This document shows, piece by piece, positions 1,529 to 41,548 of a stretch of 64,000 nt of DNA. The translations under genes and the position numbers were made by a program. Below the pieces are notes generated by a model that worked only from the letters and a program-made list of their open reading frames with translations, was not told the origin of the DNA and searched no databases. This DNA comes from Dimorphilus gyrociliatus. Taxonomy: Eukaryota; Animalia; Annelida. The stretch spans positions 1,798,001 through 1,862,000 of the forward strand of contig CAJFCJ010000001.1 of the NCBI GenBank assembly GCA_904063045.1, given 5' to 3'. How positions within the stretch are numbered: the stretch's first letter is position 1; every line of letters starts with the position of its first letter.

Positions 1529-1856
1529 TTTTTAACTAAGTTCTAAGGAGCAGCAGAAAATACTGTTTTATTGTCATATAGGCTATCTTATCTGAAGCAA
1601 TTTGCTTTGAACTTTGACAAGAGATATACAATTTGTCATTTATTTTAATGCACTTATCTCTAACAAATAATAGAACTTATAGAGGCATAGTAAACAGCCT
1701 TATACTTGTTCTTAATGCAACATACACTTAAAGCTTGTTCCAAATCAAATGTCACATGACCAAATGACACGTGATTCACTAGCAGAAGACAGAGAAAGGC
1801 TAGTTTTCTCTTTATGGAATTCTTCTATCAATTTTTGACTTTATTTGTTATTCGAA

Positions 1857-3398
1857 ATGGATATTGAAGAGTCAAAAATATTTCATAAAATTTTAACAGC
1901 CTTTACTTCATATCGCCCATATGCGAAATCCATGACAGATACATGGAAAAACTGCATAAAAGATCCAGAAACTTTGTCTCTCAATTACCAATCTATAGAT
2001 GCGAATCAAAGATTCATAAATGAGTGAGTAGGTCTAAAATGAGTAGACATGATTATATATATATGGTACTATTAGTATTGCATCATAATATTTCTATGTA
2101 AATTCTATCACAAAAACTTCAAAACAACTCGATTATAATGCCTTCTGTATAGGATGGTGGATGCTTGCTCTAGCGGAGTGTTTTTAAATGTTGATCTTAA
2201 AGAGTGTGCTGAAAAGCCTGTTTTAACTGAAGATGATATGAGCAAGGTTAACACTACATTGAAGCAATTGGTTAGAGATTGGTCAAATGTTGGGAAGGGT
2301 GAAAGGCTGCAATCGTACGGTCCAATTCTGAAAGCAATGGAACATTACTTCCCCGAGTATTTGATATTACTAATTTCTTTTGTGAATAAAGTTAATATTT
2401 TGTTTTTTATTTTTAAATAGAAACAGAGAAAATATATCAGTTTTAGTTCCGGGAGCTGGTTTAGGGAGGCTTGCCTTTGAAATGGTTTTAAATGGTTACA
2501 AGTGTCAAGCGAACGAGTTTTCCTATCATATGTTACTGGCATCTTATTTTATATTAAACTGGTAAACAGAAATAAAATATTAATTGGCAGTATAAAACAT
2601 CAAGATTCTATCATATTTTCATATAATAGCTGTAACGACATTGAAGACTTTCGACTCTATCCGTACATCCTTAATTTTGCTGATTTAGAAGTTGTTGAAG
2701 ACAGGGTAGCTTACAATTTTTAATTATTTATATAATAAAATATAATTCTTTTACAGTTAATGCCTGTTGATATTCCCGATGTAAATCCAGGTTTATACGT
2801 AACCAATCGTTTTTCTATGTGCGCCGGTGACTTTAGTCAAGTTTACAAAAACGAAGATTATAAAGGTTAGAAATAACTTTGAGCTATACATGTTTTAAAA
2901 CTTAATTTAAATATATACGTATTTATTCAATAGAAAGATTTGATTGCGTTGCTACATGCTTTTTTATTGATACTGCAAGGAATGTTCTGGATTACATAAG
3001 AGTAATATATGGAATTTTAAAGCCTAATGGTCTTTGGATAAATCACGGTGTGATTTTAGTTATATGTTTTTCTTTTTTTTTTACGGTTAATAGGAAATAA
3101 TAATATTTTTACAAAGGACCTCTAACATGGCACTATTCAAGTACAAATAAACATGATATTGATATATCTATGAAATTATCAATGAAAGAAATTTTTGATT
3201 TTGCTACAAAAGTTGGATTTTCAATTTTGGTAATAAAAAGAAATCTATTTTCTTATATTATAAATAAATATATTATGCTATTTTATCAACATTCTAAAGG
3301 AACAAGATTACGATCACCATTGCGAATATACAAGTAATAAAACATCACTTTTGGATCATATTTATAAAACATCTTTTAGCGTACTTCAAAAGATTTAG
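1857..3398 (+). CDS. CARNMT1: Carnosine N-methyltransferase (N2227/UPF0586 family), 7 exons
   Basis: Exons join through GT-AG introns into [49 protein letters not shown] and WINHGPL. Stop TAG at 3396-3398. Confidence 0.9.
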
Positions 3399-3575
3399 TA
3401 AGATATATAGTATATGTCTACTGTATTATATTTGAACTATAGTTATGTTCAATTTACTTTTCAGATAGACAATAATAAGTGAAGTGTACAAATAAAACAG
3501 TGAAAGAAAGAAGGCAACTCTGTAAAATATTGATTTTGTTTCTTCGGCTTTGTTTCTATGAAATGAGAGATAAAA

Positions 3576-3590
3576 AGAAAAGAAAAGAAA

Positions 3591-3620
<30 letters not shown>
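3576..3620. repeat. (GAAAA)n/(AG)n purine microsatellite
   Basis: The tract agaaaagaaaagaaaagagagagagagagagagaaagagagagag is directly visible between CARNMT1 and the Kelch gene. Confidence 0.85.
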
Positions 3621-3623
<3 letters not shown>

Positions 3624-3925
3624 ATATTCATTTATATGAATTTATTCATATATTATGTCTTTATAAGGAAATAAAGTTTCTTAATGTTTTTATATATTTT
3701 CTTTATATTGAACGTTTTTGTTTTTAATTATGATGGGGATTACTAGATTTTGTTGTAGATTTTTTTAAATACACGAATTTAGGTTGACATCAATTAAATT
3801 ATTTAAATATAAACTTTTTTCCTACTTTTTTTTTAATATACGACATCTTTTTTTTATCTGCATTTTGCAGATTTTTTTATAACCATCACCTAAAATATTA
3901 ATTAACGTTTTTTATTTAAAAAAAA

Positions 3926-6625
3926 ATGGACGGTAATGTTTAAATCAATATAAAAACTTTATAAAGTAGGTTATGTATATTTTTTTATTCTTTTATATAT
4001 AGGATACTATCAATCTGGACCTTGTCGGGCACCTTGCGATCCTTGTTCGCCATGTGTACCACCTCCTATTATTAGTAGAACAACTATTGTTTTTGAATTA
4101 TTTCTGAAGGTTTTATAATGATATTTTCGTAGATTGCACACCTTGTCCTATTCAAGAACCACCTCCTCCTTGCAGACCTCATGAAATAAACAATAAAGTA
4201 AAAAAGGATTGTAGAGGTATAATTTTTCAAAGGTTTACCACCTGGTCTTATTAATTGTTTGCCTAAAAGGTGCTCCTTATGGTGGCGCGCCAACAACGTG
4301 TGTATCAAATCCATGCGATCCGTGTTCGATGAATCAAGATCAGATCGATATGGATATAAATGGTTTAAAGTTCATAAACGGGGGACAGGGTCAGTTATTA
4401 TTTAATCTTTCTTCGTTTATCATTGTTTATAATTAAGTAACATATAATTAGAACATGTCATAAATTAATTCAAACAAATTGCATATTAATTATAAGTTTA
4501 CCAAAACAACATAGCTAACAACCTATTTTTTATTTTGTAAGGAGCCGGAATGCAAGGATCAGGACAGGAAACGATGCACGGAGAAGGAATGAATAATCAA
4601 CCTTGCGTCTCAAAAAAGTATCAAGAGTGTACTGGATGTTCTAATACATTATTTGCTTCACAGACTGGAGGAGCTAACAAAATGTTGTGTTTCATGTACG
4701 ATCTATGGCAAAAAGAGAGACTTTGCGATGTTATTATTTATACTCAAGATGGAGAAATGTATGCACATAAAATCGCTTTAGCTGCTCATAGCGAAGCCCT
4801 TGCAGCGCGATTTGCCGATTATCAGCCAAATGAAGTTCTAGCGTTAGATTTATGCGAGTTCAGTTGCGCCTCAATATACATTATTTTATATTTCGTATAT
4901 ACGACTGAACTTGTACTTGAAGAGGCTGATCTTGGCGAAATAGTTGCAGCTGCTGTAGAGTTAGGTTTAACCTGTCTTATTGAAATTGCAAAGAATCATC
5001 TGTCAAGGTATGATTCTTCAAATGTTCTTTGCTATCAGGTTGTTGCTGCTCGGGCTGGGTTATGGGATTTGGAAAGTGAAATGTATCGATTTATTTGCGA
5101 TCATTTTGTAGATGTAATTAATACTGGTTCGTGGGAAGCTATCGGGTTTCAGCGTATGCAGGACATCCTCTCTGATTGTAATATAGTTATAAGAGGTGAA
5201 TTGGATGTGTTTACTGCCATTGTTAAATGGATTGACTATAAAAAATGTCAGAGAATAGCGTACGCTCCTTGTTTGATGAAATTAGTTTCGCTTGATTGCA
5301 TTTCTCCAGACGATCTGTACTGCCATGTTGAGCCGGTTAGGTTTTTATTCGATATATGCGAATGTAAGGAGCAATTATACAATGCTTGGAGATATCATGC
5401 GATGAGGTGTAGCTGTCAACCTCTTCCCTGTGAGCCCGCCAGACAAAGAAGATGCGCTGGAACAGAATTCACAATTGGAACACGATCTTCTTGTCAACAA
5501 AGAGGAGTTGGATGTTCGTTGGGAAATTCTATTCAACCAAATCGACAACTCCCTGGAAGAGTTAGGAGTAAAGGTGTTATGAAGAATGAAAATGCAAGCA
5601 TGAACAATAATCTGACTCTTTTGGATAACTTAAATACATCAGCAAATGCATCAACTTTAGGAAGGATTGACAATGGTTTAATAATTGTTGGTGGTATAGA
5701 TTTAGAGAATACCAATGGTTGTGAACCTGTACAGAATGCTTATCGTTTCGACAAGACCACTAACGATTGGCAAACAGCAGCCTTGATGGAAAATAGTCTT
5801 CACCATCATGCATCTGCTATAATTGAAAAAGACCTGTACATATTCGGTGGTATCATCTTTGATAAGAAAAATCCAACAGAACTAGGAAAGATAACTAAAA
5901 AGTGTTATGTTTACCATATCGTATCGGGTAGTTGGGAAAGACTACCTAATATGATAGAACCTCGTTCTCACTCGGGTGTTGCTGTTCATACGGATAATAT
6001 ATATCTTGTTGGTGGAGAAGGTGTGTGCAAAAATCGACGACGGAAAATATCTCTCTCATCTGTTGAAGTTTTCAATATTTCATCCCGAAGTTGGAATAGA
6101 ATTCCTGATTTGCCTGGCGCAGGAAGGGCTTCTGTCGGTGCTTGCACCTTTAAAAATAAAATTTTCGTTACTGGAGGAATTAATTGTGAACAATCGAATT
6201 CTCTGTTAAACAACGTCCTTACCTTCGACATATTAGAACGTTTTTGGGAGGAAAAGAGACCACTCTCCATCCCAAGATGTCATTCTCACTTAACAGTTTG
6301 CAACGATCAACTTTACATGACAGGTGGAAGGCAATACTTGAATGGTAATAAAACTATACAAATCTCATATGGAGGAATCGATATATATGATGAAACTGAA
6401 GATGTTTGGAAGGAAGTCGGTAAATTAATCACTCCAAGACACGACTTTGGATGTACGTCTATTTCAACAAAAATTTACGTAGCTGGTGGAGTGCAGTGTA
6501 AAAGTTCGGGTTCATATACTTGCCTACGTTCGGTGGAAACATTCGACGTTGTAACCAAGAAAACACAAGAAGAGCCTAACTTATTGAGACCGATTGCGGG
6601 CGGTTTTTGCATTTCAGACGTATAG
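3926..6625 (+). CDS. BTB-BACK-Kelch (KLHL-family) protein with Cys/Pro-rich N-terminal extension. Exons 3926-3932, 4003-4074, 4133-4216, 4270-4389, 4542-6625; about 788 aa.
   Basis: The 691-aa ORF has a BTB start (LCDVII...AHKIALAAHS), a BACK domain (ELDVFTAIVKWI) and about six Kelch repeats (IIVGG, YIFGG, YLVGG, FVTGG, YMTGG, YVAGG). Four upstream phase-1 GT-AG exons splice in frame; these are less certain than the core ORF. Confidence 0.85.
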
Positions 6626-6838
6626 TGAACAATTTGCTACATTAGTTAAGGATATATATATATATGAAAGAGGCATCGGTAGCATCAAGGAATAAAAAGA
6701 TACTTAAAAAATGCTTTAAATACTTTAATAATAATTTTTTATTCTTCTATAAATATATATTACTTCTCTTTGTATTTTAAAAATTTAAACTATTTTAGCA
6801 CATTTTATTTTCAGTTGGAAAGTTTGTTCGATATACTA

Positions 6839-9743
6839 ATGTATAAGATAATTGCTTTATCGCTCATATTCTTTACCTTTTCGGAACAATTTAAATATAA
6901 AGCCGTTATAAAGAAATGTAAAGGTGATAATAGGGATTCAACTCAAATAGGATTAAATCTAAAGCAGGTTCTTAATAATAACTATGAAAACTCTTATTCT
7001 TCAAATGATCCTGAACACTTAGATGGATTGAATTGTGAAAGAATGATATCATTGCACGTTGAATTAAGCAACAATGGAAAGGTTTAAATGATTAAACTCT
7101 GATTAACTAACTTATAATTCATTTTTTTCTTTTAGACAAATAAACAAGAATATTTAATTGTCTTTTCGAAAGTTTATGATGAAGTATTAAAACAAGATAT
7201 AAGATTAACGTCTCAAATAGCCGTCAAATTAAGACAAGATCCACTAATGCTTGCTTATGAATTTCATCATGAATATGTTAGCATGTTAAATTTTTCATTT
7301 AAAGATATAACTTTTTCACTTTAAATAGAATGTTAACAATAAACCTTACGAGGTTGTTTACAACCGAAACGAAACTACTAATTATATTGGATGTTCGGGT
7401 TCTGATACGATTGTGAATTTATGCGGATCAGAAAATCGTGGATTCTGTTGTAGGTGTGCCCTGGGTCATAGAACTCAGGCGAGGGGAGGACAATCTTGCG
7501 GAACAAAATTTGGCGAAGAGGATGAAGATGTTCATGCCAGTACTCACTGCCTTCGATTTGATTCTCTCTACTATAGCGTGAATAGGCTATCTTTACCTAA
7601 AATTTATCAGCGGGTATCCATTCAATTGTACGAAGGAGAGAAGGAAGGGCGGAGAGGATGGAATAATTTTACGGATGAAGCTCCTATTCAAGTTGGAACT
7701 GATATACCTTATCAAAATGGTAAAGGAGATCAATTGTATGTTCAATATAAGGATATTGAATTTATGCCTGACAAACTACCGATTGACTTTGTCAGTAAAA
7801 AGTTATTAGTACCAACTGCTCTTCACGTGACAGAAGGTCAACAAATTCCAAAACAAATACAACGTCAACGTCTTCCAAAAAACTTTCTTATAGTTGATTC
7901 GAACTTAATTGATAACAGTCATCAATCTTGCGACAGAACTGGAATGAATTCGGCCGCATTTTTGAAAATGACAACTCCTTGCCAAGTTCCAAGGAGAGAG
8001 ATTTTACATGAATAAATCACATGGATAATTCGCCTAATACTATTCATTTATAAATATTAAAATGATAGAATGTTACGTAATTCATTCAAATCTCCCTCCA
8101 GACATACTTGTATGCATAATTCACCAAAAGACTTATTCGTCAGCGACGAAAAAAGGGTAAAGAGGGGAGAAAAAGGCAGATATCTTTTAACTAGCTTTGG
8201 TAAACTTATCGAACCTCCAGTTATAATGGAAAATAAGAATAAAGGAAAGCTTCGATTCCTTTTTGATACTTCACAACAAACCAAACTCCGAATCAATATT
8301 AAAGCTGATCAATTAAACTTTCTCGATTCACAACCGGAAGCAGAGATTGTAAAAGTTACTTTTAGTGGTTTTAAAGCCAAATCGGAAATTTTGGTGTACG
8401 TTAGAAATCCTTTAAGAATCGTATCAAAGCTTAGTGTTCGTCTAATTAAATGTGATGATGATTTTCGCTCATTAAGTCAACCTGATACATTTAAAAGTAT
8501 AGGCCCTAACAGAGTAGACCTGTTTGAATTTCATATGTTACCAGACCAAAAGCAATCTGAAATTGGTAAAAATATAAAAAACTTAAAAATGGATATGGAC
8601 TCGTTTATTAAAGGAAATGATTCGGCTAGTTTAAATAGAAAGATCTCGACTATAAATCAAGAGAAGGTATCATCAAAAAGCTGTCTAGTTCAAGTGTTAG
8701 GTGAACGAAAACAGGTTATTTCAAAGCGAAAAATCAGCTACAAAACAAAAGACTCTTGCGTTTGTCTATTATATTGCAAATGCACTTGCATATCTGATCA
8801 TACTAAATGTAAACCTATTTCCAAAGAGGAATGGCAGGCTGCCGGTTTTAGCGGCTTCATACCAAAATCTAGATCTCTTTTTTCCGGGCACGCTATCCTA
8901 ATTGAAATTCTTTTACTAGTATGTCTTTTCGGTTTGGTGATGGGATGCATGAAAGTTCTTTTAGGATCTTTTTTCATCGAATCATTCAATAAACATGGCT
9001 TGGAAAACTTCTATCCTTTAAAAAGAAATAGCAAGAGATCTAAGTCGAATGACTTTTTAATTAATTGTTGCTTTTTCATCATAGCTCCCATTTCGTTATG
9101 TTCATCATTTGTCAATAATTTTAGAAGTATCTGTGGAATGCCATTAAAAAATTCCACGAGAAAGTACACTCTACTTTCCTTGGAAGACAATAATATAAAT
9201 CTTGAAAATGAAAAATTCAACGAGCAATCTATTCAAACTGAAGAAAGTAAAGAACGCCTTATTATTGCAACTTCAATTAGACCAAATAGAGTTAATGCTA
9301 TGAGCATGAGCACGCTATCTCTTCTTCCCGTTGTATATCTAAACCTAATTGAACCAACAAAGTTACTTCTGGTAAAAGCTTGTATAATGTTAATTACTTC
9401 TAACACTTTTGTTATTATTTAATAAAGGAATCTGGAAAGCGTTTTTCCCTTGCAGGAGTTTTATCAAAATTCAATGAAAATTCTTATACTTTTCAATTAG
9501 GAAGTTATACGAAACAGGTAATACTTTAACTAGCTAAAATTTATTATAACTGTTTATTTCCTTATTTTTCTATAGTTATTCAAACTTGAAAATAATCAAA
9601 GAGTATTGCTAATACCTCCAAAATCAATTAATGAAACTGATTTTAATCTGTTACTTAAAGAGCATGAAGCAAAAGGATTATTATCAATAGTTCCACAATT
9701 TCCCTGTCTGAATAAGAAAGATACAGATTATGAATATTATTAA
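6839..9743 (+). CDS. HAP2: HAP2/GCS1 class II gamete fusogen. Exons 6839-7081, 7136-7276, 7329-7993, 8102-9371, 9428-9517, 9576-9743; about 830-860 aa.
   Basis: Signal peptide MYKIIALSLIFFTFS is followed by NNKPYEVV, GFCCRC...ARGGQSC...ASTHCLRFDSLYYSV, CDRTGMNSAAF...CQVPRHTCMHN...DEKR...GRYL, a domain-III end CVCLLYCKCTC and a TM helix (ILIEILLLVCLFGLVMGCMKVLLG). The motifs match HAP2-GCS1 family signatures from memory. The exon-4 donor could alternatively be at 9291. Confidence 0.88.
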
Positions 9744-9891
9744 GTTTCTAGTTTTATTGTACACGTTTTGTTTCTGTTTTTTATTTTTGCAGTATTTTAT
9801 ATTTTCATATTTAAATTAAAATAAATAACAAAAAGACAAATAAAAGATAAGAATTTAATAAAAGATAACAAGTCTTTTTCTTTTTCTTTTT

Positions 9892-20499: not shown

Positions 20500-22461
20500 T
20501 TTTGTTATAATATATAAAAAGAGATAATTCAATTAATCATTCTTTTAATATTAATAATTTTAAATAGCTTCTATCTTTTTGAAAGTTAATTTCCTTAATC
20601 ATTCAATAATATAAAAGAATAATATTCTTCTTGACAGATGTGAGGAATATGTCTCTTGAAATCCTCATTCTAGTAGTATCTATAGAAAAGGGTGTTGTTC
20701 ATATTCTTTACATTATTTTCTTTAGGGATGAATCAACATCAAAAAGTTTCTTTGTTATTGATAAATCATAATATGTATGTTTGTTAATTTCTACTAGAAA
20801 ATCTCTCTTCTGATTCAGAAGAAAATTCTCTTTATAAATAAATATATATTATATTAATCTTTGTTGGATATTACTATTGATTATAAATGTGAATGTTGAA
20901 AAAATTACATACAGCTGCTTCAATTATTATTCTATTTGCCTTTCAAGTGATGGAATAATAGCAGCTCTTTTAAAATAGCATAGTATTTCAATGGTACTTA
21001 AATTAAATCTTTAGAAATATATTTCTTTATATACTGCAATCATTAAAAGACATTTGTTTCAATTCTTTCCAGTTATTTTATGTTACATAAATTTCCAGGT
21101 AGATGTTCATTTAGTATTTCATATGAATTAAAGATTAGCAATATATTTGAAGGAGAGATTTAAGACATTCGTAAGTAATAGCAACAGATTGTTATAAGTC
21201 ATTCGTTGATCGCTTCTATTTGCGAAAACATTAATAGATAGAATTTTATACTCATTCTTGTATTCTGATAGCTGTCTGCATGTGTTGAGAAATTTTATGA
21301 CCTTGCTCTTAGAAATATCTTCCGGTTTTGATTTAATATCATCTGGACACCATTTGCTAAACTAAGATGTAATTTAAATAAGATCATCGAACTTTAATTT
21401 TTAGTCAATGAATGAATCATAAATAAGATTTTGACGAAAGACAGCTAAAAGTTTTCTATTTAAATTACATCCCTGAATTCTTTGTCCTCTATCAGTTCCA
21501 ACAAGTCTATAACCCGACTTACTGAACTTCTTTCTAACTTTCTTATCGATTAGATCTAAAATTATTCTCTGTTGGCAATTGCAAATCACGAACTTATCTG
21601 CTTCATAGTGCATAGGAAACTCTAAAAATTTTTTCTCATCTTTATTGCTACTAGGCTGGAAAAATATGGCTCCACCACGAACTATTATTGAGTTAAAAAT
21701 CAAACCTCCGTTTAAAAATTGCACTTGATCGATTCTAACTAGTGAATCGTTAGATTGAACTAATTTTGAGTCAAATATTATAATGAGCGTATTAATGTAC
21801 TCTCTACTAAATCGTTCGTTGTTACCGCAGTGATCGTCGCTGAGAAATTTTGACAAACGTATACCCATTTTTTCTTTATCTTTGAAGAGAACATCCATTA
21901 TCTTTTTATGCTCTAGAACATAAGTAATTGTTAGAGAGATAGGATTATGACTTATATTGCACGACATCATTGAATTAATTAGTGTAATTTTTAAAACTGG
22001 CATCATTTTTAAAATGGTTTTCCTATACAAACAGTTCACAAGGTACAATTCACTGTACCTATAAAAAGTGTATATTTTAAAAGGCAATAAAGATTTCATC
22101 ACCTGATCTGGGCTGTTCGCACATTCATAAATCTATATAAAGTTCATCATTATTAGAATTCAATATGTTTCATTTAGCTAAATAAACTATCCAGATAACC
22201 TGCCTGTTGTGGTATCATTTTAATAGGATCACTTTTTCTGAATTCTCTAAACTTTTCAACAACATAACGTCTACAAGGCAGTCCTCTACCAAGAGTTATA
22301 CTTTGATTGCATATAAATATGGCACGAGGACCATGATTATCCGCCAAACTTTTGTTATATACTACACATTGGCAAATTTCATATTGTTCAACATAGTTAG
22401 TCGCCAGCTTAGACAGATGCACCGAGGAATAAATAATAAACAAATAGTACATAAATATCAT
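20500..22461 (-). pseudogene. Degenerate or uncharacterised coding locus, possibly a secreted LRR-like gene remnant
   Basis: Open frames at 22461-22174 (hydrophobic N-terminus, Cys), 22102-21401 (233 aa; CNISHNPI, ICNCQQ) and about 21364-21128. Downstream coding-like sequence is interrupted by stops, and I found no phase-consistent GT-AG model. Boundaries are approximate. Confidence 0.3.
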
Positions 22462-39575: not shown

Positions 39576-41548
39576 TTATGAATCTGAATCAGAAAGGTTA
39601 ACAGTGGAACAAGAGCCACTATCGCTCCAGCCGTCGTCAGAAACAGCCACTTTTTGAATACTCTTTTCATAAACCTACAATTTATTTGTAAAATATATTA
39701 AATCTTGAAAAGATGTAAATTTTAATATATTACTTTGAAAGTTTCACTTATAGCTAGGGGAAATTCTGAGAAGTAACTCCAATAGACTAGGAAAACAGTA
39801 CTTCCAATAAGCTGTTCAGGTAGCTTTATATTAGTTATATGACGAGTTCTGCCATTAAAAGAGAGTGATAGTCCCGCTGGTGCATACTTATAGGCAACAT
39901 AATCGGATATAGTTCTGGCTTTTGCCTATAAAACAGAATACTTGAATTAGGATAGAGCCGTAATAATACGTTGGCAATTTACGTCTACTAGTGCTATCCA
40001 ATCCCATGAAGACGGCTTATAAGCACCGTTATCTACATAGTAACTAATATTTATGTCACCAGCAACAATTGGCTGGATTGCAAACTTAATGCGCGGAATA
40101 AAGTGAGCGTAAACCTGTAACAGAATTAAATCAATAAATTGAAAGAAAGAAGTTAAAACCTACGATAGATCTGAAATTAGCAATAACAGGTCTATGATCG
40201 CTTCTTTGAAAGATGCTATCCATTTTAGCTCTATATTCCATAGGTAGTACGTTAAAAGATTTATTAACATCATCGTCACTACTATACGATGAAGTATAAT
40301 AAAGAATACGGTCGGTATATGCTGGTTTACGTTGCTTTGATCTAAGAAAAAATACTTTTACAATACCATTTCTTTATTAATTAACTATTAAATAAAAGAA
40401 ATTAATGTTTTCTCTTTACCCTGTGTCATATTTATCACTATTGACATCGAATTTATACGTTGGTGGAAAATTGATTGGTCCCTCCTTAAAACCCAAAAAA
40501 ATAAGGCCTTCATTCATGGACTTTTTTAACTAATTGGTATAGGTGGAAATTATCAAATGAACCATTGAAAGAAAGTTAACTAATAAAACCTGATCGTTCG
40601 CTAAAAGCTGGTCATATTCATTTGATGTAATATGGTCTTCTATTGTTTTCTTATCCAGGTTATTAATTCGAAAATTCAAGTCACCCAACCAATATATGTA
40701 ACTAGATGAAAGACACAGTGTAGGAAAAGTATTAAAATTAAATATTTAGAGTATTAATGTTTAAGTCTAACTCATGATCCAAAATATTAGTGGAGTTTTT
40801 AAAGGTTTGGGTTTCTATTATATCGTCGTAGTCTCTTATTCTCTCATTCACATGTTGAAGATGAGCAGTCAAGTGAGAATTTACAAAACATATACTCGTC
40901 TGACCTATTTCAAATCTTACTGATACGGCTCCCTTACTACCCTGTTGTAAATTATTGTTAGCATTATTAGATACATTGTCGAGCCTTATAAGTATGCCCA
41001 TACATACAAGTAGGCCTCCAAAGTTGGTTCTTGTATATGATGTCTCTATGTTATGAACATAGTGAAGCCAAGGTAATCGAATCCAGACAAGTAGTTGCAT
41101 GTTCCACATGCGAATGGTTTTGATCTGTTTTTAATTGTTAATGAATATTGTGAGCAAAGAGTATGGCTTACAAACTAGGATAAAACTTTCTGCAAGAGCT
41201 CCTAAAGCTTCTTTTATAGCAGAAGTCCATAAATCTTCTCCTAGACCAACTACTGATAAATTTGCAATATATATTTCCTGCAATCTGAAAGAAAAGAGCT
41301 GTTTTTGTTGCAAACTTATCCTTAAAAACAAACCCTATAGCAATGACATCTGGATACTCTCTAGGGTTATACTTTACAAGTTTTTCAAGTTCTGGAGGAG
41401 GTGTACATTCCGCCGTATTCCATGTAATACAAGACACTCTGTTGTATGTTATTGAGCGATATTACGGGGGTTTTAATTAATACAGCAAAAGTAACACCAA
41501 ATAAAGATGACTCCAATTAACTTACCGAAGTTCTTGTCCTCCTTTCAT
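39576..41548 (-). CDS. INPP5K: Inositol polyphosphate 5-phosphatase with SKICH domain (INPP5K/SKIP-like)
   Basis: Motifs ITWN, DVIAIGLQE, CFVNSHLTAH, YWLGDLNFR, PAYTDRILY and SDHRPVI; C-terminal SSWDWIAL (SKICH). Confidence 0.88.

Follow-up and report, generated by a model that had tools for sequence, protein, structure and literature searches.

How does the gene for the fusogen HAP2 of the annelid Dimorphilus gyrociliatus continue beyond a stop codon that closes its third exon? The question is raised by a stretch of 64,000 nucleotides (nt) from this genome (GCA_904063045.1, contig CAJFCJ010000001.1, positions 1,798,001 to 1,862,000 of the forward strand), which we refer to as the window; all coordinates below are window positions unless stated otherwise. 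The exon-3 frame is closed by TAA at 8013-8015, an acceptor with the sequence tctccctccag ends at 8101, and the bases CCAAG/GAGAGAG stand at the donor (7989-8000). All three had been pointed out in an initial annotation, which proposed an intron with GA-AG ends, and all were found again in the sequence. We conclude that 7994-8101 is very probably a genuine spliceosomal GA-AG intron of HAP2, lying in phase 2 within the arginine codon of CQVPR/HTC, cut at 7993/8102, and restoring a protein of 858 amino acids (aa) when removed.

The HAP2 coding sequence and the removal of 7994-8101

The sequences on both sides of the gap belong to one protein family. Positions 67-287 of the Pfam profile PF10699 matched 7329-7991 (E 1.4e-23, 83.7 bits) and positions 292-512 matched 8103-9419 (E 3.3e-16, 59.4 bits), with a curated cut-off of 27.4, and the profile is exactly colinear over the 7993/8102 join (Q=287, V, P, R, H, T=292). 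Additionally, both flanks matched the solved HAP2 ectodomains PDB 5OW4 and 7S0K. The join yields CQVPRHTC, that is, C-x6-C, and the aligned cysteines of T. cruzi HAP2 (5OW4, C299-x6-C306) have the same spacing. The initial annotation had given this spacing for plant HAP2; the spacing itself is borne out by the T. cruzi protein and by the CLVPKDTC of a related worm described below, and the plant comparison is not its basis. Judged from its sequence, the D. gyrociliatus gene is thus a HAP2/GCS1 gamete fusogen by family membership, and HAP2 was previously known from Annelida (PMC6089408).

The long open reading frame (ORF) 7329-8012 terminates with MTTPCQVPRREILHE before the stop, and the long ORF 8061-9419 includes SRHTCMHNSPKDLF. 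It had been supposed that the conserved continuation lies in another frame, which is incorrect, because codon starts are 0 mod 3 on both sides of 7994-8101 and the gap of 108 nt corresponds to 36 codons. The removal of this segment is therefore required by the in-frame stops that it contains (TAA at 8013-8015 and another at 8058-8060), and not by a frameshift. Since exons 3 and 4 share a frame, we considered a ciliate-type stop reassignment with read-through. This was rejected, as the exon-4 frame contains no TAA or TAG in 453 codons under the standard code and 36 residues would land between the cysteine pair.

To define the possible junctions, every donor at 7700-8012 was combined with every acceptor at 8016-8400 and the pairs giving a stop-free, in-frame join were retained. 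For the acceptor ending at 8101, there were no in-phase GT or GC donors between 7963 and 8011, in line with the initial annotation, and the in-phase donors near the exon end start with GA, AA, TC, TT, AG, AC, TG, or AT. No in-frame acceptor is available to the GT at 7986 before 8162, so that the second conserved cysteine is lost, again in agreement with the initial annotation, and the GC sites at 7981 and upstream have no in-frame acceptor before 8130. Across the full enumeration, no GT-AG, GC-AG, or AT-AC pair retained both cysteine codons (7980-7982 and 8109-8111), and these canonical solutions, including AT-AC, were rejected because each loses one or the other.

Three runs of one sequencing study (X1, X2, and X3) were compared with window positions 6600-9866. 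In X2, a contig of 329 nt (record 10) aligned with 0 mismatches to 7938-7991 and to 8100-8374, leaving out 108 nt (the slack is 2 nt), and this joint of 7991 to 8100 is equivalent to 7993/8102. Its equivalent placements are AG..CC, GG..CA, and GA..AG; none of them is canonical, and GA..AG is the only one with an AG acceptor. A k-mer assembly is unable to create such a joint from a 2-nt repeat, and reads across 7993/8102 must therefore exist. The re-assembly of the DNA run X1 gave one contig of 28.8 kb with a word depth of 268, which is identical to the window over 6600-9866 and has A at 7995; the joined 7993/8102 form was absent from this deep re-assembly over the same interval. These results indicate a real GA-AG intron, the first of the explanations initially offered for the locus. 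The spliced product cannot be reconciled with the second, a splice-killing allele, and the third, a single-base assembly error, is unlikely given the identity of the X1 re-assembly. The GA donor might or might not regulate fusogen output, as was also suggested. In addition, the window was base-for-base identical to the public contig CAJFCJ010000001.1 of GCA_904063045.1 over the 19.7 kb compared.

The contigs of X2 total 41.6 Mb, the longest being 17.9 kb. This run covers only the transcribed parts, with a word depth of about 5 on HAP2 and of 46 and 277 on the neighbouring genes; depth thus differs about 50-fold between adjacent genes, and coverage ends at transcript ends. Another X2 contig (record 12) is unbroken over 9088-9515 and retains the canonical intron 4, which introduces a premature stop, while intron 5 is removed; because of the retained intron, RNA fits better than DNA. 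From the coverage and the two removed introns, we infer that X2 is an RNA-seq-like run, and the genome project deposited stage-specific RNA-seq under the same accession (PMC7854359).

The same intron was identified in a related worm known from the Logan assemblies SRR23372228, SRR23372229, SRR23372231, and SRR31984834. This relative shares the gene order CARME - Kelch - HAP2 (L001, a 53.7-kb contig of SRR23372228; L002 and L003). Its intron at L001:5890-5990 has 101 nt, GT-AG ends, and the same codon and phase (CCAAA/GTATTG...TCTTCTTTCAG/AGAC), and the join gives CLVPKDTC. The presence of an intron at the same codon and phase indicates that intron 3 is old. Of the 13 introns traced in three neighbouring D. 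gyrociliatus genes, 12 are GT-AG and one is GA-AG; in the relative, ten orthologous introns were traced, each of them GT-AG. A comparison of the two sequences suggests that the donor was originally GT and that its +2 T probably became A in the D. gyrociliatus lineage.

HAP2 identity between the two worms is 60% in exon 3 (P0003) and 37% in exon 4. The Kelch protein of the relative is, by eye, far more conserved, and its mini-exon peptide GPCRAPCDPCSPCVPPPII is identical; the pace of HAP2 evolution is therefore much higher than that of the neighbouring genes. A search for spliced-product fragments with a 100-aa piece of exon 4 found nothing, and a search with exon 3 returned only the relative, under a length filter that placed longer fusions outside its reach. 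The T. axi run X3, searched at 80% likeness, gave short repeat matches only, and no ortholog was recovered.

The traced HAP2 gene has six exons on the + strand (6839-9743), which sum to 2574 coding nt, or 858 aa, and the last three junctions are concordant with the public protein. Its parts are as follows:

6839-7081, + strand: HAP2 exon 1, an ORF from ATG 6839 ending in NNGK; the ortholog has the same NNGK/GT boundary in L001
7082-7135, + strand: intron 1, GT-AG, 54 nt
7136-7276, + strand: HAP2 exon 2
7277-7328, + strand: intron 2, GT-AG, 52 nt; X2 contig record 9 begins exactly at 7329
7329-7993, + strand: HAP2 exon 3, with a PF10699 match; ends in TPCQVP plus AG of the split Arg codon
7994-8101, + strand: intron 3, GA-AG, 108 nt, phase 2, AAG/GAGAGAGAT...ATCTCCCTCCAG/A; skipped exactly in X2 contig record 10
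8102-9371, + strand: HAP2 exon 4, starting A/CAT ACT TGT (R-HTC), with PF10699 and 5OW4 matches; the rest of the ectodomain
9372-9427, + strand: intron 4, GT-AG, 56 nt; spliced out in the public model and retained in X2 contig record 12
9428-9517, + strand: HAP2 exon 5, in the public protein sequence
9518-9575, + strand: intron 5, GT-AG, 58 nt; absent from X2 contig record 12 (joint 9515 to 9574, cut +2)
9576-9743, + strand: HAP2 exon 6 including the stop codon, from the ORF and the public protein

By eye, the N-terminus encoded by exon 1 (MYKIIALSLIFFTF) is hydrophobic and resembles a signal peptide, and a hydrophobic stretch in exon 4 (GHAILIEILLLVCLFGLVMG) appears to be a transmembrane (TM) helix. 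Exon 3 contains the GFCCRC motif region, which we take to be the fusion-loop region.

Donor recognition and pairing of the intron ends

The general donor consensus GURAGU has a purine at +3. The donor AAG/GAGAGA of intron 3 fits MAG/GURAGU at -2, -1, +1, +3, +4, and +5, with mismatches only at +2 and +6, and cgTAAt, some 22 nt away from the acceptor, is a candidate branch site. The exon ends in AG (CCAAG/GA), in accordance with the rule for the exon end at GA donors of Eurytemora and Oikopleura (PMC5714493, PMC7072748). Because the other core positions fit, namely the exon-end AG, +1 G, +3 R, +4 A, and +5 G, the GA donor would most likely still be recognized by the major (U2-type) spliceosome. 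An Rfam scan of the window for small nuclear RNAs gave no match.

The two ends of the intron form an inverted repeat (I5), complementary at 11 of 12 positions, in which the +2 A pairs with U8097:

7993-8004, + strand: 5' arm GGAGAGAGATTT, one exon base (the last) followed by intron positions +1 to +11, with the +2 A at 7995
8088-8099, + strand: 3' arm AAATCTCCCTCC, a C-rich tract that stops 2 nt before the 3' splice site

This terminal stem belongs to the minimum-free-energy fold of the region (z = -2.2). With RNAduplex, the ends of the GA-AG intron gave -14.8 kcal/mol, against a background of -4.3 +/- 2.6 kcal/mol for 9126 equally spaced arm pairs in the window, 0.2% of which were as good (p ~0.002); 0.12% of the shuffled arms were as good as the intron 3 duplex. 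For 22 homology-defined GT-AG introns of the two species, the value was -3.2 +/- 1.7 kcal/mol (best -6.4), and for the GT ortholog of intron 3 it was -4.0 kcal/mol. The neighbouring introns have A/T-rich ends (...TTTTAG or ...ATAG), among which the C-rich tract of intron 3 is atypical. Since this acceptor tract is unusual, generic complementarity between purines and pyrimidines does not explain the pairing. As a hypothesis drawn from one intron, the terminal stem would juxtapose both splice sites and thereby compensate for the weak donor. The GT ortholog without the stem and the GA intron with a strong stem form a natural pair, which makes it testable whether, in an animal, pairing of the intron ends can make up for a 5' splice site that is defective.

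Within the intron, the 17-mer ATGGATAATTCGCCTAA (8021-8037) matches the start of exon 4, ATGCATAATTCACCAAA (8112-8128), at 14 of 17 positions. Read as peptides these are MDNSPN and MHNSPK, in the other frame (shuffle p ~0.01), and the likeness may be the trace of a local duplication or due to chance.

Several points weigh against a genuine GA-AG intron. The junction is carried by a single contig with a depth of about 7, from the same project as the assembly, and X2 is labelled only 'DNA?', which is a guess, its RNA nature being our own deduction. X1 may have been the source of the assembly or of its polishing, and a minor T allele at 7995 is conceivable. The ancestral GT state is taken from a single relative. 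The base at +3 is G (7996), still a purine, where GA donors in Eurytemora and Oikopleura nearly always have A (PMC5714493, PMC7072748). Finally, with the 5' splice site and the pyrimidine tract both buried in a stem, poorer binding of U1 and U2AF would ordinarily be predicted.

Alternatively, the A at 7995 could come from a mistake in assembly or polishing, or belong to a minority or strain allele, and the animals that supplied the RNA would have T and an ordinary GT-AG intron. An RNA contig cannot display the bases of the intron itself, X1 is possibly the assembly's own data, contigs drop rare variants, and the ortholog has GT. Nevertheless, the separate de Bruijn re-assembly with its word depth of 268 shows A, yields no other contig and, over 3.3 kb, does not differ; moreover, the pairing of the +2 A with U8097 in the 11/12 stem and the atypical C-rich acceptor tract suggest a co-adapted sequence state, and we regard such an error or allele as very improbable. 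The joined form in X2 could also derive from intron-less copy DNA (a retrocopy or an intron-loss allele) or from template switching during reverse transcription, leaving the genomic HAP2 broken. The 'DNA?' label, the low depth at the joint, and the 2-nt direct repeat flanking the junction (AG 7992-7993 and AG 8100-8101) are in line with this, but no joined form is present in the deep DNA run X1, and the coverage of X2 is bound to transcripts and varies about 50-fold, with one canonical HAP2 intron removed and another retained. An artefact is also unlikely to fall at the exact position of the orthologous intron while keeping the frame and the colinearity of the profile, and the remainder of HAP2 is intact across 858 codons; a copy or artefact is thus very unlikely.

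The stem itself could be explained by a recently inserted Introner or miniature inverted-repeat transposable element (MITE), whose terminal inverted repeats would form the stem and whose imperfect end would account for the GA. The 11/12 terminal repeat (7993-8004 versus 8088-8099) is indeed flush with the splice sites. However, an intron of nearly the same size (101 versus 108 nt) occupies the identical codon and phase in the relative and is therefore older than the split, barring a replacement in situ; the 31-nt core has no further copy in the window at <=3 mismatches, and the 'target duplication' has just 2 nt, so that a recent insertion seems highly improbable to us. A U12-type (minor) intron with GA-AG ends, like that of zebrafish actr10, is hardly credible. 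Natural U12-type GA-AG introns have been reported (PMC2831892) and some minor introns persist in D. gyrociliatus (PMC10639083), but the 5' end GAGAGAGAT has nothing of the U12 donor motif RTATCCTT and no ATCC core, the interval 10-26 nt from the 3' end contains no TCCTTRAC branch motif (the closest sequence, TCATTCAA, matches at 5 of 8 positions), and the GTATTGAAA of the ortholog is likewise not U12-like.

Public gene model and neighbouring sequences

The translation of exon 4 is 100% identical to the public protein DgyrCDS483 (P0001) of D. gyrociliatus. This protein has 519 aa and begins with MLRNSFKSPSRHTCMHN at the ATG 8070-8072, which lies within intron 3 on the + strand; its gene is called at L004:10001-11674 of the public record, corresponding to window positions 8070-9743. 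It lacks 339 codons from the start of the traced gene (858 aa), and these encode the hydrophobic N-terminus and the GFCCRC region. The genome was annotated with EVM/PASA according to the genome paper. Gene-prediction pipelines that accept only canonical junctions could not bridge intron 3, and for this reason the public model has its start at an ATG within the intron. The HAP2 of D. gyrociliatus, a key reproductive gene, is thus corrected from 519 to 858 aa.

The gene table of the public record, in the form retrieved, lists no gene over window positions 1529-8069 (L004:3460-10000). This interval contains a CARME-type methyltransferase gene (about 2500-3400), a BTB-BACK-Kelch gene (about 3926-6622), and HAP2 exons 1-3. 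The BTB-BACK-Kelch gene includes three Cys/Pro-rich mini-exons that are conserved in the relative. The eight traced introns of the CARME and Kelch genes are all GT-AG, and the absence of these two genes from the table is therefore not explained by non-canonical splicing. In addition, a (GA)n-rich simple repeat lies between them at 3588-3625, and in the read layout near 6740, contigs derived from repeats have a similar GAGAGA run as a loose end.

Elsewhere in the window, two stretches on the minus strand have ends in inverted repeat. At 21362-21472, a candidate GG..AG intron of 111 nt has perfect 12-nt inverted repeat ends (G/GATGTAATTTAA ... TTAAATTACATC/TTAG). Its removal fuses two long ORFs in phase 0 (RGQRIQ/FSKWCPDD), and a canonical GT 4 nt further in gives just a 20-codon tail; the Pfam search on the two flanking ORFs gave no family. 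At 41253-41320, a GA..AG stretch of 68 nt has a terminal inverted repeat of 13/14 (GATAAGTTTGCAAC... / ...ATTGCAAATTTATC), and there is no convincing ORF over it, spliced or retained. Two ab initio scans of the window, one for hairpin-ended G..AG introns and one for non-canonical introns that bridge ORFs, gave output too noisy for counts.

Comparison with known systems

Compared with known HAP2/GCS1 proteins, which are class II gamete fusogens, the D. gyrociliatus protein shows nothing unusual: the family profile, the spacing of the cysteine pair, the hydrophobic N-terminus, and one TM-like stretch (by eye) are all alike. What is new here concerns the intron and the truncation of the public model. 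Our literature search found no paper that links D. gyrociliatus or annelids with GA-AG introns, and the D. gyrociliatus genome paper contains no occurrence of 'non-canonical' or 'GT-AG'. The present locus thus provides one RNA-supported GA-AG intron in an annelid.

GA-AG introns are extremely scarce in the majority of genomes (14 among 222,263 introns in human, cited in PMC5714493) and frequent in Eurytemora affinis, a copepod, and in the larvacean Oikopleura dioica, where automated gene models are broken too (PMC5714493, PMC7072748). The U2-type GA-AG and GG-AG introns of these two animals resemble HAP2 intron 3 in the +1 G, the +2 A, the AG acceptor, and the obligate AG that closes the upstream exon, and likewise in gene models truncated as pipelines reject the junction. 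The differences are fourfold. Such donors make up about 3-12% of the introns in Eurytemora and Oikopleura, whereas here one has been verified, 1 of the 13 traced in three neighbouring genes. At +3, the D. gyrociliatus intron has G, where theirs is almost always A (PMC5714493, PMC7072748). Pairing of the intron ends was found here and is not mentioned for theirs in the accessible portions of these reports. Finally, the copepod introns appear to have been recently gained, whereas HAP2 intron 3 stands at an old, shared position.

We suggest, tentatively and as somewhat less probable than not, that D. gyrociliatus may carry a sizeable, hitherto unreported class of G(A/G)-AG introns with a terminal RNA helix, an architecture like that of euglenid intermediate introns, arisen independently of those of Oikopleura and Eurytemora. 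With such a class, structure would assist in defining introns whose donor is defective. The published annotation would then be interrupted at each of these introns, and its estimates of intron gain and loss would have to be revised. The genome of D. gyrociliatus was presented as 'conservative' and compact; if GA-AG introns are widespread in it, genome compaction in three unrelated animal lineages would be accompanied by a relaxed recognition of the +2 donor position.

The GA 5' splice site of human FGFR1-3 (Brackenridge et al. 2003, cited in PMC7072748 and PMC5714493) is alike in being an efficient GA donor, with a good consensus elsewhere, in an otherwise canonical animal gene. The FGFR site reportedly needs a canonical site 6 nt upstream and is involved in alternative splicing (PMC7072748). 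Unlike it, the D. gyrociliatus site lacks a GT at the corresponding distance (7988-7989 is TC), and an intact protein is obtained from the GA site alone. The nonconventional and intermediate introns of euglenids share with HAP2 intron 3 a non-canonical border together with a stable helix that joins both junctions (PMC3935182, PMC4770533, PMC6221363). The nonconventional ones are without the frame of +1 G and AG and without complementarity to U1, whereas the HAP2 intron keeps G...AG and a near-consensus donor in an animal host; taken as an analogy, the resemblance to the euglenid introns is one of architecture only.

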